Both the position numbers and the translations under genes were made by a program. Positions 1,145 to 26,602 of a DNA stretch of 64,000 nucleotides are shown here, piece after piece. Below the pieces are notes generated by a model. It ran no database searches. It was not told where the DNA came from and was given only the letters and a program-made list of their open reading frames with translations. Numbering within the stretch: position 1 is the first letter of the stretch; the number at the start of each line of letters is the position of its first letter. This stretch comes from Octopus sinensis (Eukaryota). The stretch covers positions 8,680,001 to 8,744,000 of the forward strand of contig NC_043012.1 of NCBI RefSeq assembly GCF_006345805.1, read 5' to 3'.

Positions 1145-2659
1145 GCATGCATACATACATAAATCCTTTCTATAATAGGCACAAGGTCTGAAATTTGGGG
1201 GGTGGGAGCTAGTCGATTAGATTGACCTTAGAACACAACTGGTATTTAATTTATCGATCCCGAAAGAATGAAGGGCAAAACTGACCTTGGTGGAATTTGA
1301 ACTCAGAACGTACAGACAAACCAAATGCCACTAAGCATTTTGCCAGCCATGCTAATGATTCTGCCAGCATACATACATGAACAGACACACACACACACAC
1401 ACACACGTATATATTTAATGTAATCTGCATAAAAATTTCTCGTGTTTCTCCTTCTGTCATGGAGCTGGCTATTCAGAAGGACTTTTGAAATTCTGTTGTC
1501 ACTCATTCTGACAACATGGCAAAGCCATCTTAATTGGGATTGCAAAAGAAAGGATTCAATACCACCAATTTCACATTAAGAGATAAGTTGGTATTCAAAA
1601 TTCTGTCATTCAGTCTGTCTCTGCAAATTGTCCAAAGACATCAATTATGACAGATATCATGTATGTGTGTGTGTGCCTGCGTGTTTGTGTATATACACAC
1701 ACATGCATGTGGCTGGAAAGCAAACGTCTTAACCACACATCCACACATGCTTATATAAACTTCTGTCAACTTGCGTTCAGAAGCAATGATGGATGTATCA
1801 CAAATTCCATTAATTATAAAATTCATTTGACATTATTCCCATTGTTCCAGATCTTTTAAAACAAATCTCTGTATATATAAACAGCAAAATGTCTGTCTGT
1901 GTGTGTGTATCCTTTATACAAATCCACAATTTTTCAGTTAGAGGGTTCGCACTTTCTATGGTCATTCAAAACCGTCCAAGGGTGGTCGTGCACATCTTTA
2001 CATTTCCCCAGTTATCCCACAAAGCAATTAAAAAATCGATAGAAGTGACTTTTTGGTGAATTTTCTATCCAAAACCCCAATCAAAATGCCCGAAACTTGA
2101 TACGCCAATTGAATGCCAGCTAGCTGCATGTGATTGGTCGGAGATTTGGACAGTACTCGCGTGTATGTGTGCACGCGCGCAGCTGTAGATGCATGCACCA
2201 GCACTATATAAAGTAGCAGCTCCCATACCAGTATTACTGATATTGTATATCACACATTATATATATGTTGTATATCACCAAGCTAAAGATATCAAACAGA
2301 CATATCAAACCTGGTGAAAATGTTGGGTAGTTTTTTTGTAGGTTCGATGTTTTGGGAGAGAATGATGTGTTTCTGCACGTGTGCTGTGGGTATCTGGCAT
2401 CTTCATCAACAGACAATGGTTCCGGACTGCTGTGTTCTGATGATAATGTGTTGCTTTGATAGAGATGCCGCTGTGAACGGGTTCGATGATAAAGTGGCAA
2501 TTTCTCTGGAGAAAAAAGAATATATATACACACATATACATATGTAAACAATTTTTTTTGTATCATTAAATTACTAGAATGGCTCTTCCATAATGATTTT
2601 AAAAATTATAGTTCTGGAAATATAAAGAGGTTAAATAGAAAGCAATGACATTTTCTTAC

Positions 2660-2773
2660 CTGCCAGGTGATTATAAGGATAATTACTGGACATCCAATAA
2701 CGCTTCATCATGAGGTCTGGAGCTAACTGGGCAGCTTTCAGTACAATGGTCTCTCGTCCTTGGTTAGCTGCCC
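2660..2773 (-). CDS. Candidate internal exon of an unidentified minus-strand gene (G-AANQGRETIVLKAAQLAPDLMMKRYWMSSNYPYNHLA-G)
   Basis: CAG acceptor, strong CAG|GTAAGA donor, 114 nt, phase 1/1, open in only one frame, non-repetitive; no homology recognised. Confidence 0.3.
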
Positions 2774-3672
2774 CTGACTTAGAGATGTAAAAATAACATT
2801 TCAAAACTGTGGATGGGAAAAATAACAGCATCTTTAGAAAAAAAAATTAACGGGAAAAGATGGACACAGAAGTGATTGTGTGGTTCAGAAGTTCATTTCG
2901 GGTTCAATCCCACGATACAGTACCATAGGTACTGTATTTAGGTACTTGATTATAGCAGTATGGGTATATGTAAACTGTGAAGAAACCCATCAAATAATCC
3001 ATTTTTGTTCTCAAGATTAATCCATTGTTAAGTTCATAACCACTACCTCGCCTTTATTTGGGTCAGCTATCTAAATCCTAAAAAAAAAGGATCAGAGCCA
3101 CAATTATTTCTCCTCTCATTAAACAATTTAACTGTCTCATTCTTGGGCCACTGGGTCTAACTTTACCCTCCACTAAGCTCCTGAGCAAAATAATAGATAG
3201 TTGCATACACATCTGAAGAGTAACAATTGCAGGCAAACTAACAGACGGAATTGGCTGCATCTTCTTTTCCTATGTGTGTTGTTTATTACCACTTTACAGG
3301 GAATCTGGCAGAGATGACATTTAACCTATACCCACTGCAGCAGGAATATGGTGTGACAGGGTTGAATTAAAATTTTCAGAACAAATTCAAAACAAGAAAG
3401 CTCAACTTCCAAGGAGTCAAGTATGCAATCTGGTCTCTATTTCAAATGATAATTATTTTCATTCACTTATATCACTAATGCTTTTCAGAAAAGCATGAAG
3501 ACCACATCAACCCACTCTCCTTTATGCATTTGAGACCATCTGTTTCTAGAGGAGGAGTAAGTTGATCCCAATGTTTGACCAGTACTTTATTTTACTGTCT
3601 CTAGAAGTATGAAAGGCAAAGTCAGCCTTGGCGGAATTTGAACCCAGAACGTAAAGACCTGGAAGAAATACC

Positions 3673-6160: not shown

Positions 6161-6694
6161 TATAGATAGATAGATAATGTTATTGTAAGGATAATTTTTT
6201 AACAAGAGAACTAGATTCACGGAAGAGTTAAATGTAGTTTTCACATTAGTACCTAAGATACAAAACCAAAGAAAATGAAGCACAGGTGATATCTGCTATA
6301 TACATACATACATATATATATATGTGTGTGTGTGTATACATATATACTCACTTCTCTCGCACCGATCATCTTCTTCTGGCGATTAAACATGGTTGTCTGT
6401 CTAATTGAGCATTTAATCCCAGAGTTTAACGATGGCTGTGAGTAATTATGTAAGAGCCTGAGTGCTGCTCTTGTAGTGGTTTAAACTGGAGAGTGAGGTG
6501 CTCGCTGGTCGACGTAGCGATGGCGATAGTGTCACGACTGGTGCATTTATTGGTGTTGGTGATAGTGGATGCGTAAATACATCAAGCGGAGATACAGAGG
6601 TGTAGTCGTGGTTGTAGGTGAGATGTACATGGCTCAGAGCTTGCCGGTATGGGAAATGAACGAGTAGTAGTAGTAGTAGCTGTTACGATAAATA

Positions 6695-7050
6695 GGCGTA
6701 GGCGTGGTAAGAATTTTGCTTTCCAACCACGCAGTTTTGAGTTCGGTCCCACTGCAAGTCACTTCGGGCAAGTGTCTTCCACTGTAGCCTCTGGCTGACC
6801 AAAGCCGTCTGAGTGGATTTGGTAGACGGAAACTGAAACAAGCCTGTCATGTGTTTATGTGTGTCGGTTTTTTTTGTTTATCCTCCACTGCCGCTTGACA
6901 ACTGTTATTGGTGTGTTTACGTTTCTGTAATCTAGCAGTTCGGCAAAAGAAACCAATAGAATAAGTATAGATAGATCGATTTGTTCAGCTAAAATTCATG
7001 GCGGTGCCCCAGCATGGCCACAATCTAATGATTAAAACAAGTAAAAGAAA
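6695..7050 (+). mobile_element. tRNA-derived SINE family B
   Basis: ggcgtagg..gtggtaag head, gagttcggtccc B-box, central gggcaagtgtcttc domain, tail gcggtgccccagcatggcc..aacaagtaaaag. Confidence 0.8.
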
Positions 7051-7437
7051 ACATTGACAGAGAGAAATGTTTTTCACCAGATGTTTTGGTATATTCTTAT
7101 TCATAAAAATTTGACTTTACTGAATAATATACGATAAGTTACTGGACTGTTTGGACCCCATGGAAATCTCTTAAGTGATCTCCCTTTAATTTATCCACAC
7201 CCACTGCAGGATATGGGTTCTGTATTATAAGAAGGAAACACTTGCCATTTATATAGTGCTCCCACGACAAACAACAATGAACCCTGCCAGGGAAAGAACA
7301 GGAAAATAAACTGATGAGAGAAGAGAGAAGTGCTTGCAAAGATAAGACTTCTCGGGTGAATAGAAAGTGAAATAGCTGGACAGATAAGAAAAGTATGTTT
7401 ATAAACTAAATCATTTCATAATTTACAATGTTATTAT

Positions 7438-7846
7438 ATCATCATCATCGTTTAGCGTCCGTTTTCCATGCTAGCATGGGTTGGACGGTTCAACTGGGGT
7501 CTGTGAAGCCAGAAGGCTTCATCAGGCCCAGTCAGATCGGGCAGTGTTTCTACGGCTGGATGCCCTTCCTAACACCAACCACTCTGAGTGTAGTGGGTGC
7601 TTTTTACGTGCCAGACAGAGCTGGCAAACGGCCATGAACGGATGGTGCTTTTACGTGTCACCAGCACGGGGGCCAGGCGAGGCTGGCAACAGACATGAAC
7701 GGATGGTGCTTTTACGTGCCACCGACACGGGGGCCAGACAGAGCTGGCAAACGGCCACGAAACAGATGGTGCTTTTACGTGTCACCGGCATGGGGGCCAG
7801 GCGAGGCTGGCAACGGACACGAACGGATGGTGCTTTTACGTGCCAG
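7438..7846 (-). mobile_element. RTE-tail element with internal ~61-bp tandem array
   Basis: (ATC)n end plus family core; about 4 tandem units ...ctggcaa..cggatggtgcttttacgtg... Confidence 0.85.
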
Positions 7847-12287: not shown

Positions 12288-13555
12288 GGTACCATGTAAC
12301 TTTGCCCAATGCTGAAGGTTAACAAAGACACAGAAGCTACAATTGATTTTGTGGGTATGTGTGTTTTCATGAGTAGCAAAGATAATATTTATTAAAACTG
12401 AGTTATAGCAGTGTTCTGGAATGTTGCAGACGTGTCTGAGAGTTCTACCAGATTTCTCAAGGTTGGAGCTTGCAGTTCATGTGAATTCACTTGAATGTTT
12501 CTGCTAAAATTTCTCAAAAAAAATCACACACATATTGGATCTTACAATGTACAATGTGTGCATGTGTGTGTCTGTGATAACCATCCCTAAACCAGAAGCC
12601 AATGAGACCTGCATGTAAGGAATCGAAACCTTTAATATCTCTATGCTGGGCTGAACTGAATAGTAAAATCTGAAGTTATGATAAGTGTGTTTATGATATA
12701 TGATGTATCATAGTCATATCATATATAGAATATACAATGAAATGCAGATATGGCTGTGTAGTGTAGAAGCTTGCTTCCCAACCACATGGTTTTGGATTCA
12801 ATCCCACTGTATGGCACCTTGGACACGTGTCTTAAAAATCCCATGAGTGGATTTGGTAGATGGAAACTGAAGGAAGCCCATCTTGTGTGTGTGTGTGTGT
12901 GATTATCATTGTTTCCCTGTCATGAAATTGCATAATAGTTGAAAATGAGCATCATCATCATCATCATACAAGCAATTTTGTTCATTTCGAAACTGTTATG
13001 AAAACATGTCTAGCCATGAAGAAATTAGCTTACTCGGAAACAAGTGATGGTGGGTGGCAGAAAGAGCATCCAGCTATAGAAAATCTGTCTCAACAAATTC
13101 CATCTAACCCATGCAAGCATAGGAAAGTGGATGTTAAAAAAGATAATACATCATTTCACCATTCCAACTTCTATTCCACCCTACATAACCTAAGACTAAT
13201 CCAATTGTGAATGAAATTTGGTCAGGGAAACTGTGTGGAATCTTGTGGGACTTTTTACCCGTTCCTGGTTGGTGGATGACCCCAGTGAGTTACTTGCTTC
13301 AGCACCATCACCACATCATCACACGATGCTTGGGTGTTTCTGCGGAGGACATTCTGTTGCAGACATTTAGACCAAGACTCCAAACTAAGGATCCACCGTA
13401 GCAATCTATCATTTATGGTTCCTTCAGCTGAATAATATCGGTGACCTTAGAATAAGTTACGGAGCCTCATCCTCCTCATTCTGGTTATGCCAAATGAGTA
13501 CACACACACACTGTTGTAGGACAGTGAAATATTGACTGCTATCAATCGATATCAG

Positions 13556-13786: not shown

Positions 13787-14493
13787 GATATCAGTAATTT
13801 TGATAGTTCCATCTTCGGTTGGATTGTCAAGAGATTAATATCCCAACATGTGTCAGTTGTTGATTGTAGATTACAGACTACTGAAGGCATCCATTTCTGA
13901 AAGCACAAAGAGAAAAAGACGATGTTTAAATAATTACAGCCGCACATTCATATACAAATCTGTGTTAGAGTATATGTAGGTACATACACATACAGAGAGT
14001 ACCAAGTCTTTGTGAACACTATGTTAGTGGGTCATAAATGGGTAGGCAATCTAACATCATGTACCAAAATAAGCACCAAATTTTAATGTTCTCATTTCTC
14101 TCTCAGATCATCATCATCATCGTTTAGCGTCCGCTTTGCATGCTAGCATGGGTTGGACGGTTCGATTGGGGATCTGGGAAGCCAGAAGGCTGCACCAGGC
14201 CCAGTCTGATCTGGCAGTGTTTCTACAGCTAGATGCCCTTCCTAATGCCAACTACCCCGTGAGTGTAGTGGGTGCTTTTTATGTGCCACCGGCCACGATC
14301 GGATGGTGCTTTTTATGTGCCACCAGCACGGATACATCAACAAAATCAACATGGCAGATTCCAGCCTGACAAGAAATGGTAAGACAGGTTAGGCTTGTGG
14401 CTCCATCCAACAGCCAAAGTAATTCAGAGTTTATTAGCTTTTTGAACACAGTCAGATTATGTTGAAGGTCAGGAAAGAGCAGGAAGCCTTTGG

Positions 14494-23864: not shown

Positions 23865-24110
23865 AGTTTATTGTTGTGGCAACAGAAAGGAGTGCTATCA
23901 GCAGGATGAAAGTCAGCAATGAATATAGCATTGAATTTAGTGTGAAGGTAGGAGTTCACCAGGGCTTGGCTCTTAGTCCCCTTTTATTTACCATAGTTCT
24001 CCAACCCATGACAGGGGAGTTTAAGAAGGGTTGCCTGTGGGAGCTCCTCTATACTGATGACCTTGTTCTTATAGATGAATCTATAGTAGAACTGGAAAAG
24101 CACTTGGAGA
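23865..24110 (+). mobile_element. RTE reverse transcriptase fragment
   Basis: VKVGVHQGLALSPLLFTIVLQ...LLYTDDLVL (QG-SP and YADD motifs). Confidence 0.9.
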
Positions 24111-24829
24111 GTGCAGACCTCCACAAAGCAGCTCATTTCCACCAGTTTACATGCATGCTGAAAATTGCCCAATTTCCCAAACCGATGCCAGCAAAAACAT
24201 AACCTCCTTGGCGGGGGGTAAAAAAAAAAACCCTTTAAAAACAGGAATCATCTGAAGCAGTTCACAACCACCAACATCATCATCAGCATTGTCATTGCTT
24301 CCACTTCAACCACATACACTGCCATCAATATTATCACGACGGTTACCTTGACAGTCACTTTCACCACCACAACCAGTATAACCACTGCAATGCCACCATC
24401 ACACAACTAACACTATCATCAACACCACTATTACCACCATCATACTGCTCCTGTCGCCATTATAACTACTGATGCTATTTTATCCTCCTCCCATACTTAT
24501 CTCAACCATCATCATCATCAACACTGCCTCTAAACAGCAACGCCACCATAGGTTATGTGGAAACGATGAACATGTTTTCAAGGGAGATAATCAAAGAATG
24601 TAACATTGTAAAGTAAATACAGCAAATGAAAAATCCTTCAAGAATCCATAAAAATTCCCAGATCACTACCAAATTTTCATCATCTGTTCCTTGTGTCACT
24701 ACCAACTTTTCCTGCAAGTTTTATCAAATACCATTCACAAATTTTTGAGTTATTTTGTACAAAGATGGACAAACCAAGGCCAATGAAAATATAACCGCCT
24801 TCCTTGGCGGTGGGTAATTAGAGAAGAAA

Positions 24830-25250: not shown

Positions 25251-26102
25251 GTTGTGCTTGAGAAAACCCATCCAAGTAAAATTGAGGCCCTAAAGGTATG
25301 TCTGTGCACCTGTACACAATCTATCCCCAACTCATCTTCCTAACACCCGCTTACTCCACCCATGTTCACCATTCACTGCATTCCCCTCAACTTACCTGCA
25401 CATAATCCATCCCTGAAAAGTCTCTTCCGCTCCCACAATCTATGTTCCTAACACCCCTTCCCACCACCTGTGTTTACTCTCTGCACACCTCTTCCCCACC
25501 ACCTCCCACTTTCCTTTCTCTCGCTCACCTTATCCTTCACTTTTATACACCTCCCTGCAACTTGAGGGTAGACTCCTACAACAAGACACCTGTTTCTGTC
25601 CCTCTAATCATACTCACCACTTTGCACAAAGTCACCTCCTTCAATACTAGAACCCTTACTTAGCTAAGGAGTCATGTCTTGCAAATTACTTGGTCTCACT
25701 GGTGCTATATGAAAATGCACCCAGTACACTCTGTAGAATGGTTAGCATTAGGGAGAGCATCCAGCCACAGAAACCATGCCAAAACAGACAGTACAGCACT
25801 ACACAGTCTACTGGCTTGCGAGCTCTCATCAAACTGTCCAACCATGCCAGCATGGAAGGAGAACATTGAATGATTCAATTAGCATTCAATGCAAGGATTT
25901 ATTCAGTCAATAGGTCCCCTCTTTTGTTATATTACTGAGAAAGACCAAATCTTTGGCGGGACTTCAGCAGATTTCTGGTACCCCCAATATATACTACTGG
26001 CTACATCATGCTCATTAAGAAAATTGATAATTATAAAAACAAACAAGATCACATTAAATAGAAACAAAATTTTCCCAGTGTTTTTAAGAGAGAATTTGTC
26101 AT

Positions 26103-26108
26103 TTTATT
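26103..26108 (-). terminator. Distal AAUAAA poly(A) signal of snf/SNRPA
   Basis: Plus-strand tttatt; followed on the minus strand by a CA ~22 nt downstream and a U/GU-rich tract (ttttgtttct..tgtgatcttgtttgtttt). Confidence 0.6.
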
Positions 26109-26289
26109 GTCATTCTCTTATTTATATTTCAATATAAAAGAAAAATAAACAAATATCTCAGTTGGAAAAAACGAACAAACAAAAACTATGAAACTGAAAG
26201 GAAGAAATCTGTCAATGAGTTTTGGTAAGAATATTGTGAATTAGCTTCACCCCCACCACCCACCAAAATGAAGAATGTAAAATGAGAAT

Positions 26290-26317
26290 CCACCGTCGGA
26301 TGGTGCAATGACGATGG
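26290..26317 (-). promoter_or_regulatory. U1 SLII-like hairpin (U1A/SNF binding site) in the snf/SNRPA 3'UTR
   Basis: RNA CCAUCGUC-AUUGCACCAUCC-GACGGUGG: 8-bp stem (one G-U), C-G closing pair, loop starting AUUGCAC. Confidence 0.75.
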
Positions 26318-26326
26318 CATTAATGC

Positions 26327-26350
26327 TGCTTACCATTCCATCTGGTAGCA
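26327..26350 (-). promoter_or_regulatory. Hairpin containing a 5'-splice-site-like U1 site (G/GUAAG) in the 3'UTR
   Basis: RNA UGCUACCA-GAUGGAA-UGGUAAGCA: 8 bp with one bulged A. Confidence 0.55.
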
Positions 26351-26371
26351 AAGTTGTGCCGAATTTGATGG

Positions 26372-26377
26372 TTTATT
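26372..26377 (-). terminator. Proximal AAUAAA candidate, ~66 nt after the stop codon
   Basis: Plus-strand tttatt. Confidence 0.35.
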
Positions 26378-26442
26378 TTGTAAGTTTTACTGAAATGCAC
26401 CAAATCTCTTTCATCATATTTTTACTTGTCTCCTTCCTTGTC

Positions 26443-26602
26443 TTACTTCTTAGCAAATGTGATTTTCATTGCATTGTTTGGTGTAATCTTGAAGCCTTGA
26501 AGTGCATCCTTTGCAGCACCAGCTTGCATTTCATTTTCAAATTCAACAAACGCAATATCATGTCGACCAGGCACCAAACGAACCTCTTTGAAACCAGGAA
26601 AT
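26443..26602 (-). CDS. SNRPA: snf/U1A-U2B'' coding exon 6 (RRM2 C-terminal half, stop)
   Basis: [52 protein letters not shown]; ttttag acceptor. Confidence 0.98.

Follow-up and report, generated by a model that had tools for sequence, protein, structure and literature searches.

A conserved U1 site beside a putative SNF-binding hairpin in the 3′ untranslated region of the cephalopod U1A/SNF gene

In the stretch of Octopus sinensis DNA analyzed here (contig NC_043012.1, positions 8,680,001 to 8,744,000, 64,000 nucleotides; hereafter, the window), the 3′ untranslated region (3′UTR) of the minus-strand U1A/U2B″/SNF gene carries a sequence like a 5′ splice site (5′ss) next to a hairpin resembling a binding site of the encoded protein, which raises the question of whether this sequence is a regulatory U1 snRNP (small nuclear ribonucleoprotein) site, a splice donor or a chance match. 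The autoregulation of U1A through a polyadenylation inhibition element (PIE) and a synergizing U1 site is a textbook case described for vertebrates, and the vertebrate U1A (SNRPA) 3′UTR autoregulatory module is said to go back to Boelens 1993. A sequence-only reading of the window had proposed that the same two-part logic, i.e., a U1 site masked by base pairing plus a U1A site, is present here and had mentioned a 3′UTR splice donor as the alternative. The site proved to be a real 5′ splice donor, observed in RNA of Sepia and present in a gene model of O. vulgaris. It is moderately probable that a functional U1 site and the SNF hairpin form a negative-autoregulation module acting via poly(A)-site suppression or on export, with read-through splicing as a by-product.

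The conserved 3′UTR block occupies positions 26278..26350 of the minus strand, is unique in the window, and is made up of hairpins A and B with the spacer between them and of a further 12 nt past hairpin B. The 5′ arm of hairpin A, UGCUACCA (26343..26350), and its 3′ arm, UGGUAAGCA (26327..26335), which bears the 5′ss core, enclose the loop GAUGGAA (26336..26342); the predicted fold contains 8 bp and the bulged A26331, with a minimum free energy (MFE) of −7.4 kcal/mol in RNAfold (z = −2.5; 5 of 200 shuffles were equally good). The predicted probability of pairing in Octopus was approximately 0.9–1.0 outside the bulge region and 0.4–0.5 at positions +3/+4 of the site. Hairpin B (26290..26317, minus strand) is separated from hairpin A by 9 nt and consists of the 8-bp stem CCAUCGUC/GACGGUGG and a C-G-closed 12-nt loop, AUUGCACCAUCC, with the heptamer AUUGCAC (−10.1 kcal/mol, z = −2.5); it is similar to stem-loop II of U1 small nuclear RNA (snRNA) and is thus a putative SNF/U1A site. 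Both hairpins were found in the RNAfold MFE structure of the local region, and the z-score of the 101-nt fold was −0.83. The spacer is the palindrome GCAUUAAUGC (26317..26326, minus strand). The sequence, hairpin A, the palindrome, the spacing and the positions described earlier from the letters alone are all present on the minus strand.

The U1 snRNP site and 5′ss is AAUG/GUAAG (26329..26337, minus strand; the slash marks the exon–intron boundary), with the exon ending at 26334 and the intron starting at 26333, 109 nt past the stop codon; its GGUAAG core lies at 26334-26329. Pairing with the 5′ end of U1 at −1 to +5 and at +7, as previously noted, was confirmed. The energy of the U1 duplex was −8.0 kcal/mol, compared with a range of −5.7 to −9.1 kcal/mol across the gene's five authentic donors, and the site therefore has to be regarded as strong; the former rating as moderately strong does not hold for a site which has GU at +1/+2 and U1 complementarity like that of authentic donors. 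The ATTGCAC word was found in one copy only in the Octopus 3′UTR, and its heptamer AUUGCAC is predicted to be single-stranded within a structured element of the gene's own 3′UTR. The architecture of PIE (two heptamers, two internal loops and a U1A dimer) was not found in Octopus, where the element is a single hairpin-loop site. A probable distal poly(A) signal, AAUAAA (26103..26108, minus strand), lies approximately 225 nt downstream of the U1 site and would mark the octopus polyadenylation site, while a second AAUAAA (26377-26372, minus strand) is upstream of the module.

Two further sequences were identified downstream of the block. The first is CUUACCA (26229-26223, minus strand), approximately 100 nt downstream of the 5′ss, which resembles the U1 5′ end and is the exact complement of UGGUAAG; it is kept in three Octopus species, and in the predicted fold its local partner is UUUUGGUGGG instead. 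The second is a possible local 3′UTR acceptor (26219-26186, minus strand; 115–150 nt past the donor) with the branch-point-like sequence CUCAUUGAC, the pyrimidine tract UUCUUCCUUUCAG and UUUCAUAG, the first AG of which is lost in O. bimaculoides.

Conservation was assessed in the corresponding loci and transcripts of O. vulgaris (L019), O. bimaculoides (L021), Argonauta hians (L001) and Sepia, the latter being represented by the S. pharaonis genome (L020) and eight RNA contigs (L002-L009). The sequence AAUGGUAAG was invariant in all five species, including the Octopus of the window, and was always located 12–16 nt upstream of the CCAUCGUC-AUUGCACC hairpin, i.e., hairpin B, as a conserved upstream U1 site in a U1A-type module would be. 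The parts of the locus alignable between Octopus and Argonauta were the coding exons, one Vps26 exon, two short intronic pieces and a sole 3′UTR segment, namely, 26350-26278 (74 nt). The identity of this segment was 90.5%, which exceeded that of every coding exon (74–85%), and its 5′ edge coincided with the first base of hairpin A. The 3′UTRs of Octopus and Sepia, compared by shared-word analysis and local alignment, were unalignable apart from the two longest shared non-repetitive words, CCATCGTCATTGCACC of the hairpin and, second in length and collinear with it, GAATGGTAAG. A shared word of at least 10 nt within the 37 nt upstream of the hairpin was obtained in 26 of 20000 shuffles in the local test; any shared 10-mer in the whole-UTR shuffle was obtained in 27% of shuffles, a result that is uninformative owing to A/T runs. 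It should be noted that GGTAAG was seen 23 times in the window, with 24.5 expected. Judging from these counts, the site is no more than chance would give within one sequence alone, and more than chance across species.

Hairpin B was paired in 100% of the alignment cells across cephalopods and kept its C-G-closed AUUGCAC loop, with two one-sided compatible changes in Sepia. The 3′UTR contained one AUUGCAC hairpin in Octopus and Argonauta and two in Sepia (L020/L005, +46 and +107). The palindrome of the spacer was broken in O. bimaculoides (GCAUCAAUGC) and Argonauta (GCAUUAAAAGC) and was absent in Sepia; it is not conserved, was rejected as a functional element and no longer belongs to the layout proposed earlier. 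An origin of the block from a repeat or transposon was also rejected, since the block occurs only once in the window and its position is orthologous.

The conservation of hairpin A was of a different kind. Of the two arms whose conservation had been suggested as a check, the 3′ arm kept its GUAAG core in five species, and the 5′ arm was kept only in octopods (Octopodiformes) and was absent in Sepia. In O. bimaculoides and Argonauta, A26346 is replaced by G opposite the U of GU, so that A-U becomes G·U and pairing is kept. The closing U-A pair is missing in Argonauta, in whose MFE structure UGCAAUGG is bound instead to the SNF site's CCAUUGCA; the G to C change in the Argonauta loop creates UGCAAUG, the complement of CAUUGCA. 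Four of the eight hairpin A pairs can form in Sepia, in which the donor follows the stop codon by only 25 nt; the stem predicted there is that of GGUAAGGAAGG with the downstream CCUUCUUUGACUA, enclosing hairpin B. According to these models, sequestration of the site in each lineage is plausible, and the specific predicted stem is an octopod feature that may act as a regulatory mask.

Words complementary to the SNF site (GGUGCAAU, UGCAAUG and GUGCAAUGA) were also detected upstream in several 3′UTRs (L001, +231/+338; L024, +14; L010/L015, +77). The complementary word abuts the 5′ss in Argonauta and lies 17 nt upstream of GGGUAAGC in the lophotrochozoan sequences P0124/P0125, and its Octopus counterpart is the imperfect UUUGGUGCAUUU (26404-26393, minus strand). 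These words may allow an alternative pairing in which the AUUGCAC loop is concealed; the per-UTR shuffle P was only 0.008–0.08.

Use of the site as a donor was observed in RNA. Two Sepia contigs from two samples, L003 and L004, contain the SNF mRNA up to AAAAAGAATG followed by ATGGCTGACACAAGC, where the genome reads GTAAGG, so that both depart from the genome exactly at AATG/GTAAGG. The identity to the S. pharaonis genome was 100% for L004 and approximately 98–99% for L003, which presumably comes from another Sepia. In the contig L025, a stretch identical to this downstream sequence over 952 nt follows a different upstream exon, and the common part begins exactly at ATGGCTGAC; therefore, this point is a true exon boundary, and the joint in L003 and L004 is a splice and not an assembly chimera. 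The acceptor exon of Sepia contains an ORF of 151–156 aa that has only unnamed relatives and no Pfam family, and neither the exon nor the ORF was found in the octopus window, in the Argonauta locus or in the 10 kb downstream of Sepia SNF. The site was unspliced in the remaining six of the eight Sepia contigs shown. One of them, L005, spans the U1 site as well as both hairpins with AUUGCAC and reaches, approximately 320 nt downstream, a poly(A) run that follows AAUAAA. Since the unspliced contigs include this polyadenylated one, the element normally lies in a terminal exon.

The orthologous donor is also used in a deposited O. vulgaris gene model. The protein CAI9733970.1 (“LRRC49-like isoform X4”, 1090 aa; model P0240), a member of the SNF protein cluster, is SNF fused to the product of the downstream LRRC49-like gene, and the O. 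sinensis LRRC49-like protein clusters with SNF for the same reason. Its junction peptide, ITFAKK-WN-EMVAF-VLK, is reproduced only by one specific exon chain. This chain starts with a donor in the stop codon, AAGAA/GUAAGA, and a 104-nt intron ending at CCAG (the hairpin A 5′ arm and the first loop base, 26342), continues with the 8-nt exon AUGGAAUG (26341-26334) and the donor G/GUAAGC of the site under study, and ends with the 15-nt exon AAAUGGAUGCCUUCA (13882..13896, minus strand), which receives the 26333 donor, and an alternative acceptor of exon 2 of the LRRC49-like gene. The exon itself occupies 2655..2806 (minus strand), and the alternative acceptor is CCACAG (2812-2807), located upstream of it, with the junction at 2807/2806. 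Thus, the fusion model corresponds to 26444-26334, 13896-13882 and 2812-2655 of the window (minus strand) and to 12416-12527, 24094-24108 and 35466 of the O. vulgaris locus. The annotation of O. vulgaris was built from Iso-Seq and RNA-seq data via StringTie, PASA and EVM (PMC10700109), which makes it probable that the conjoined transcript rests on evidence; the intron starting in the stop codon and the 8-nt exon may nonetheless be artefacts. Taken together, the alternative named by the sequence-only reading, a 3′UTR splice donor, was borne out by the exon–exon junctions in the Sepia RNA contigs and by the O. vulgaris model.

Nonsense-mediated decay (NMD) is associated with a junction more than 50–55 nt downstream of the stop codon. 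The distance from the stop codon to the junction was 109 nt in Octopus and 344 nt in Argonauta, past this limit, and 25 nt in Sepia, where the first junction falls short of it.

The favored explanation, i.e., a U1 site and an SNF hairpin acting jointly in negative autoregulation, can be presented as follows. Hairpin B would mimic stem-loop II of U1 snRNA, and free SNF should bind it. U1 snRNP at AAUG/GUAAG, aided by SNF at the adjacent hairpin, would then hinder cleavage and polyadenylation and/or the export of the mRNA. Transcripts escaping 3′-end formation would read through, and the same site would serve as a donor into the exons of any downstream gene, giving conjoined RNAs that are expected to be unproductive. 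In octopods, hairpin A could sequester the site and may tune its accessibility. We infer in this way that U1 and SNF bind the element, that polyadenylation or export is affected, and that a feedback results in which the stem might have some role. The cephalopod data closely fit the pattern of the known systems described below: a consensus U1 site is situated in a terminal exon beside the putative site of the encoded protein, most of the mRNAs are unspliced, and a minority is spliced from that site into a downstream gene, which is a different one in Sepia than in Octopus. The host gene, which encodes a U1A/U2B″/SNF protein, is also that of a U1A-type autoregulatory module.

The likeness to known systems is considerable, although in each case incomplete. 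In mammalian U1A, a conserved 5′ss-like U1 site upstream of PIE represses the poly(A) site together with the U1A–PIE complex, as described in the part of PMC3157836 that cites Guan et al. 2007, and the U1 site is drawn within a stem in the corresponding part of PMC3694450 (for the U1 site, PIE and poly(A) repression in U1A, see also PMC5071671). The cephalopod element belongs to the same gene family and has AUUGCAC-type putative U1A sites in its own 3′UTR; a conserved 5′ss-like U1 site precedes them closely in the terminal exon, ahead of the poly(A) signal. For the octopod site, too, a stem is predicted. The two modules differ in that the vertebrate PIE has two internal loops, whereas the cephalopod element has one or more hairpin loops similar to U1 stem-loop II; moreover, unlike in the vertebrate module, the cephalopod poly(A) signal is approximately 200–300 nt away, the U1 site has the full consensus core and is demonstrably splice-competent, and the site's partner in the stem lacks conservation among cephalopods.

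A conserved U1 site lying upstream of a poly(A) site, that of RNPC3 (U11/U12-65K), leads to read-through and conjoined RNPC3-AMY2B transcripts (PMC5473595). In the U11 system of the minor spliceosome, an snRNP protein gene is likewise regulated by an snRNP binding to 5′ss-like elements in its own 3′ region, but these are tandem U12-type sites that remain unspliced, the system lacks a hairpin to which the encoded protein could bind, and it belongs to another gene family. In viral U1-dependent suppression of poly(A) sites (the major splice donor of HIV-1 and foamy virus and the late 3′UTR of BPV), an upstream 5′ss also represses a poly(A) site via U1 snRNP, and local RNA structure decides the access of U1 (PMC3694450; PMC5071671); the contexts, however, are long terminal repeats or late UTRs, without an autoregulatory protein hairpin. 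Finally, 5′ss motifs in terminal exons inhibit polyadenylation through U1-70K and cause nuclear retention and decay (PMC4380460, PMC9074902), with consensus sites lowering export and stability via U1-70K and ZFC3H1. By analogy, this would apply to the unspliced polyadenylated mRNAs of Sepia and Octopus that keep AAUGGUAAG, although the pathway is a general quality-control one in human cells and not a gene-specific conserved element.

The comparison was extended to other lophotrochozoans. Hairpins of the (C)AGC-AUUGCAC-NNN-GCU(G) type were found in the 3′ regions of the U1A/SNF genes of several other groups. The most numerous were those in the chiton Liolophura sinensis (L022), where approximately 17 tandem 50-nt repeats at 6640-7480 (+258 to approximately +1100 after the U1A/SNF stop codon) each bear a CCCAGC-AUUGCAC-AUU-GCUGUG hairpin, forming an array of putative U1A/SNF sites. 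Three hairpins each were identified in Haliotis (L023; +284, +311 and +339), Pecten (L024; +407, +670 and +706) and a Paralvinella-like annelid (L018; +134, +162 and +232), and AUUGCAC hairpins were present at +173 to +308 in L010-L017. The lophotrochozoans P0124/P0125 had three to four exact AUUGCAY motifs and variant copies of the AUCGCA type. Among the 3′UTRs examined, six bases matching the U1 consensus were found upstream of the first hairpin only in cephalopods and in the P0124/P0125 clade, where AAGCUGGGUAAGCUU lies within a perfectly conserved 37-nt block. On this comparison, the putative SNF-binding hairpins look ancient and general and the U1 site patchy, and the distribution suggests a lophotrochozoan-wide autoregulation of U1A/SNF through AUUGCAC hairpins.

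Several observations weigh against a joint action of the U1 site and the SNF hairpin on polyadenylation. The poly(A) signal is approximately 225 nt from the U1 site and approximately 195 nt from the SNF hairpin, while the vertebrate PIE is much closer to its poly(A) signal; inhibition of poly(A) polymerase (PAP) by vertebrate U1A needs two bound molecules, and Octopus has one AUUGCAC hairpin only. Helix A is without covariation (117 of 500 shuffles reached the observed value in the pair-count test), and the stem is not common to Sepia. GGUAAG upstream of the hairpins is absent in the U1A/SNF 3′UTRs of the chiton, abalone, scallop and annelid despite their AUUGCAC hairpins, which means that the hairpins can work without a U1 site. 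No Rfam family was detected in the whole window at the gathering threshold, including the vertebrate PIE model if Rfam has one, and the search of 26050-26460 at E ≤ 10 gave three chance-level matches only. Thus, of the two-part logic proposed earlier, a conserved U1 site 12–16 nt upstream of an AUUGCAC hairpin in the gene's own 3′UTR was retained, and its masking was reduced to an octopod-only stem lacking covariation.

Among the other explanations, it is possible, but rather unlikely, that the site serves regulated unproductive splicing, in which the donor of a 3′UTR intron, local or extending into a downstream gene, makes the SNF mRNA a target of NMD or decay and SNF at the hairpin promotes or blocks U1, polyadenylation inhibition being uninvolved. 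Donor use, seen both in RNA of Sepia and in the O. vulgaris model, the octopus junction beyond the 50–55 nt limit, and good branch-point, pyrimidine-tract and AG candidates 75–140 nt downstream in Octopus (26219-26194), Argonauta and Sepia are consistent with it. However, the acceptors differ by lineage (LRRC49-like in Octopus, as against the gene with the unnamed 151-aa ORF in Sepia), O. bimaculoides has lost the candidate local CAG, and most contigs, none of which among those shown for Sepia is a locally spliced isoform, retain the site. Non-conserved acceptors and the merely 25 nt between stop and junction in Sepia thus weaken this explanation. It is still less probable that the element is only an SNF-binding or structural platform formed by hairpins A and B, with GUAAG kept as part of the structure or footprint and acting as an opportunistic cryptic donor in read-through RNA. 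The octopod conserved block does begin exactly at the hairpin A 5′ arm, and in other lophotrochozoans the AUUGCAC hairpins stand alone, with no U1 site; nevertheless, Sepia, which lacks hairpin A, keeps the exact 9–10 nt 5′ss word, and what is conserved in this word is none other than the consensus core for U1.

The exon chain of the O. vulgaris model could also be taken literally, hairpin A then bounding the 8-nt micro-exon and removal of the stop codon giving SNF-LRRC49 fusions or a C-terminally altered SNF. This is very improbable: although no other exon structure reproduces model P0240 and CCAG at the acceptor is kept in Octopus and Argonauta, exons of 8 nt typically arise in automatic annotations as artefacts of alignment or ORF bridging, the donor in the stop codon, with a U1 duplex of −4.5, is weak and varies among species (GUAGGA in O. 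bimaculoides, GUAAUA in Argonauta and GUAGUC in Sepia), Sepia has no such acceptor, and the extended reading frame is not conserved. A chance 5′ss-like word next to a chance hairpin, both without function, which the sequence-only reading had allowed for, would agree with the frequency of GGTAAG in the window and with the z-score of the 101-nt fold, but it is hardly credible in view of the invariance across species, the rarity of such a shared word in the local shuffles, the identity of the block above that of the exons and the use of the donor; conservation and the RNA junctions effectively refute it. A more far-reaching proposal, which we regard as possible, but rather unlikely, is that the pair of 5′ss and SNF hairpin is a sensor of free SNF and U1 snRNP that switches between polyadenylation and conjoined splicing, with hairpin A as a riboswitch-like gate whose arms are the 3′ and 5′ splice sites around the 8-nt micro-exon, and that this logic predates the protostome–deuterostome split or evolved repeatedly, within a lophotrochozoan-wide autoregulation.

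If the favored explanation of joint U1 and SNF action holds, the new element would be the same two-component logic in cephalopods with a different architecture, namely, a hairpin similar to U1 stem-loop II beside a splice-competent U1 site. No description of autoregulatory elements in invertebrate U1A/SNF 3′UTRs was found in the literature library searched. The origin of homeostasis circuits of snRNP proteins thereby becomes testable, as the two elements may have been paired since early in bilaterian history or may have come together by convergence. The locus would also be a compact natural example of the interaction of a terminal-exon 5′ss, a protein-binding hairpin and a poly(A) site, and bears on U1 telescripting, read-through conjoined transcripts and mis-annotated gene fusions in cephalopod genomes.

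The host gene was reconstructed using tblastn and a manual splice model. Its six coding exons are located at 33145-33082, 31950-31778, 30549-30401, 29286-29174, 27304-27187 and 26602-26443 of the minus strand; the last of them (26443..26602) encodes the second RNA recognition motif (RRM) and ends with the stop codon UAA at 26445-26443. The spliced product of 258 aa has two RRMs, with identities of 100% to Octopus sinensis U1 snRNP A and 92% to the Argonauta hians protein. The DNA identity of the window was approximately 92–94% to O. vulgaris and approximately 85% to O. bimaculoides. Short ENA members of the Octopus SNF protein cluster were set aside as last exons of non-cephalopod origin.

Vps26 lies upstream of SNF in head-to-head orientation, and this order is common to Octopus, Argonauta and Sepia (L002/L003, 1-1610; L001, 1-1704; L019, 1-762; L020, 1-9708). 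Two Sepia RNA contigs contain Vps26 and SNF in opposite orientation with a gap of only approximately 125 nt; this close arrangement suggests that one bidirectional promoter serves both genes and that their transcripts overlap. The LRRC49-like gene is located approximately 20 kb downstream of SNF on the same strand, and the space between them consists mostly of repeats. SINE-like dispersed repeats are present in dozens of copies in the window (e.g., 14288-14100 and 13750-13570), and a fragment of a reverse-transcriptase-like ORF was found at 23876-24202 of the plus strand. The sole conserved intronic pieces of the SNF gene between Octopus and Argonauta, 30748-30699 and 30648-30614 (minus strand), lie upstream of coding exon 3 and have an identity of 80–86%.

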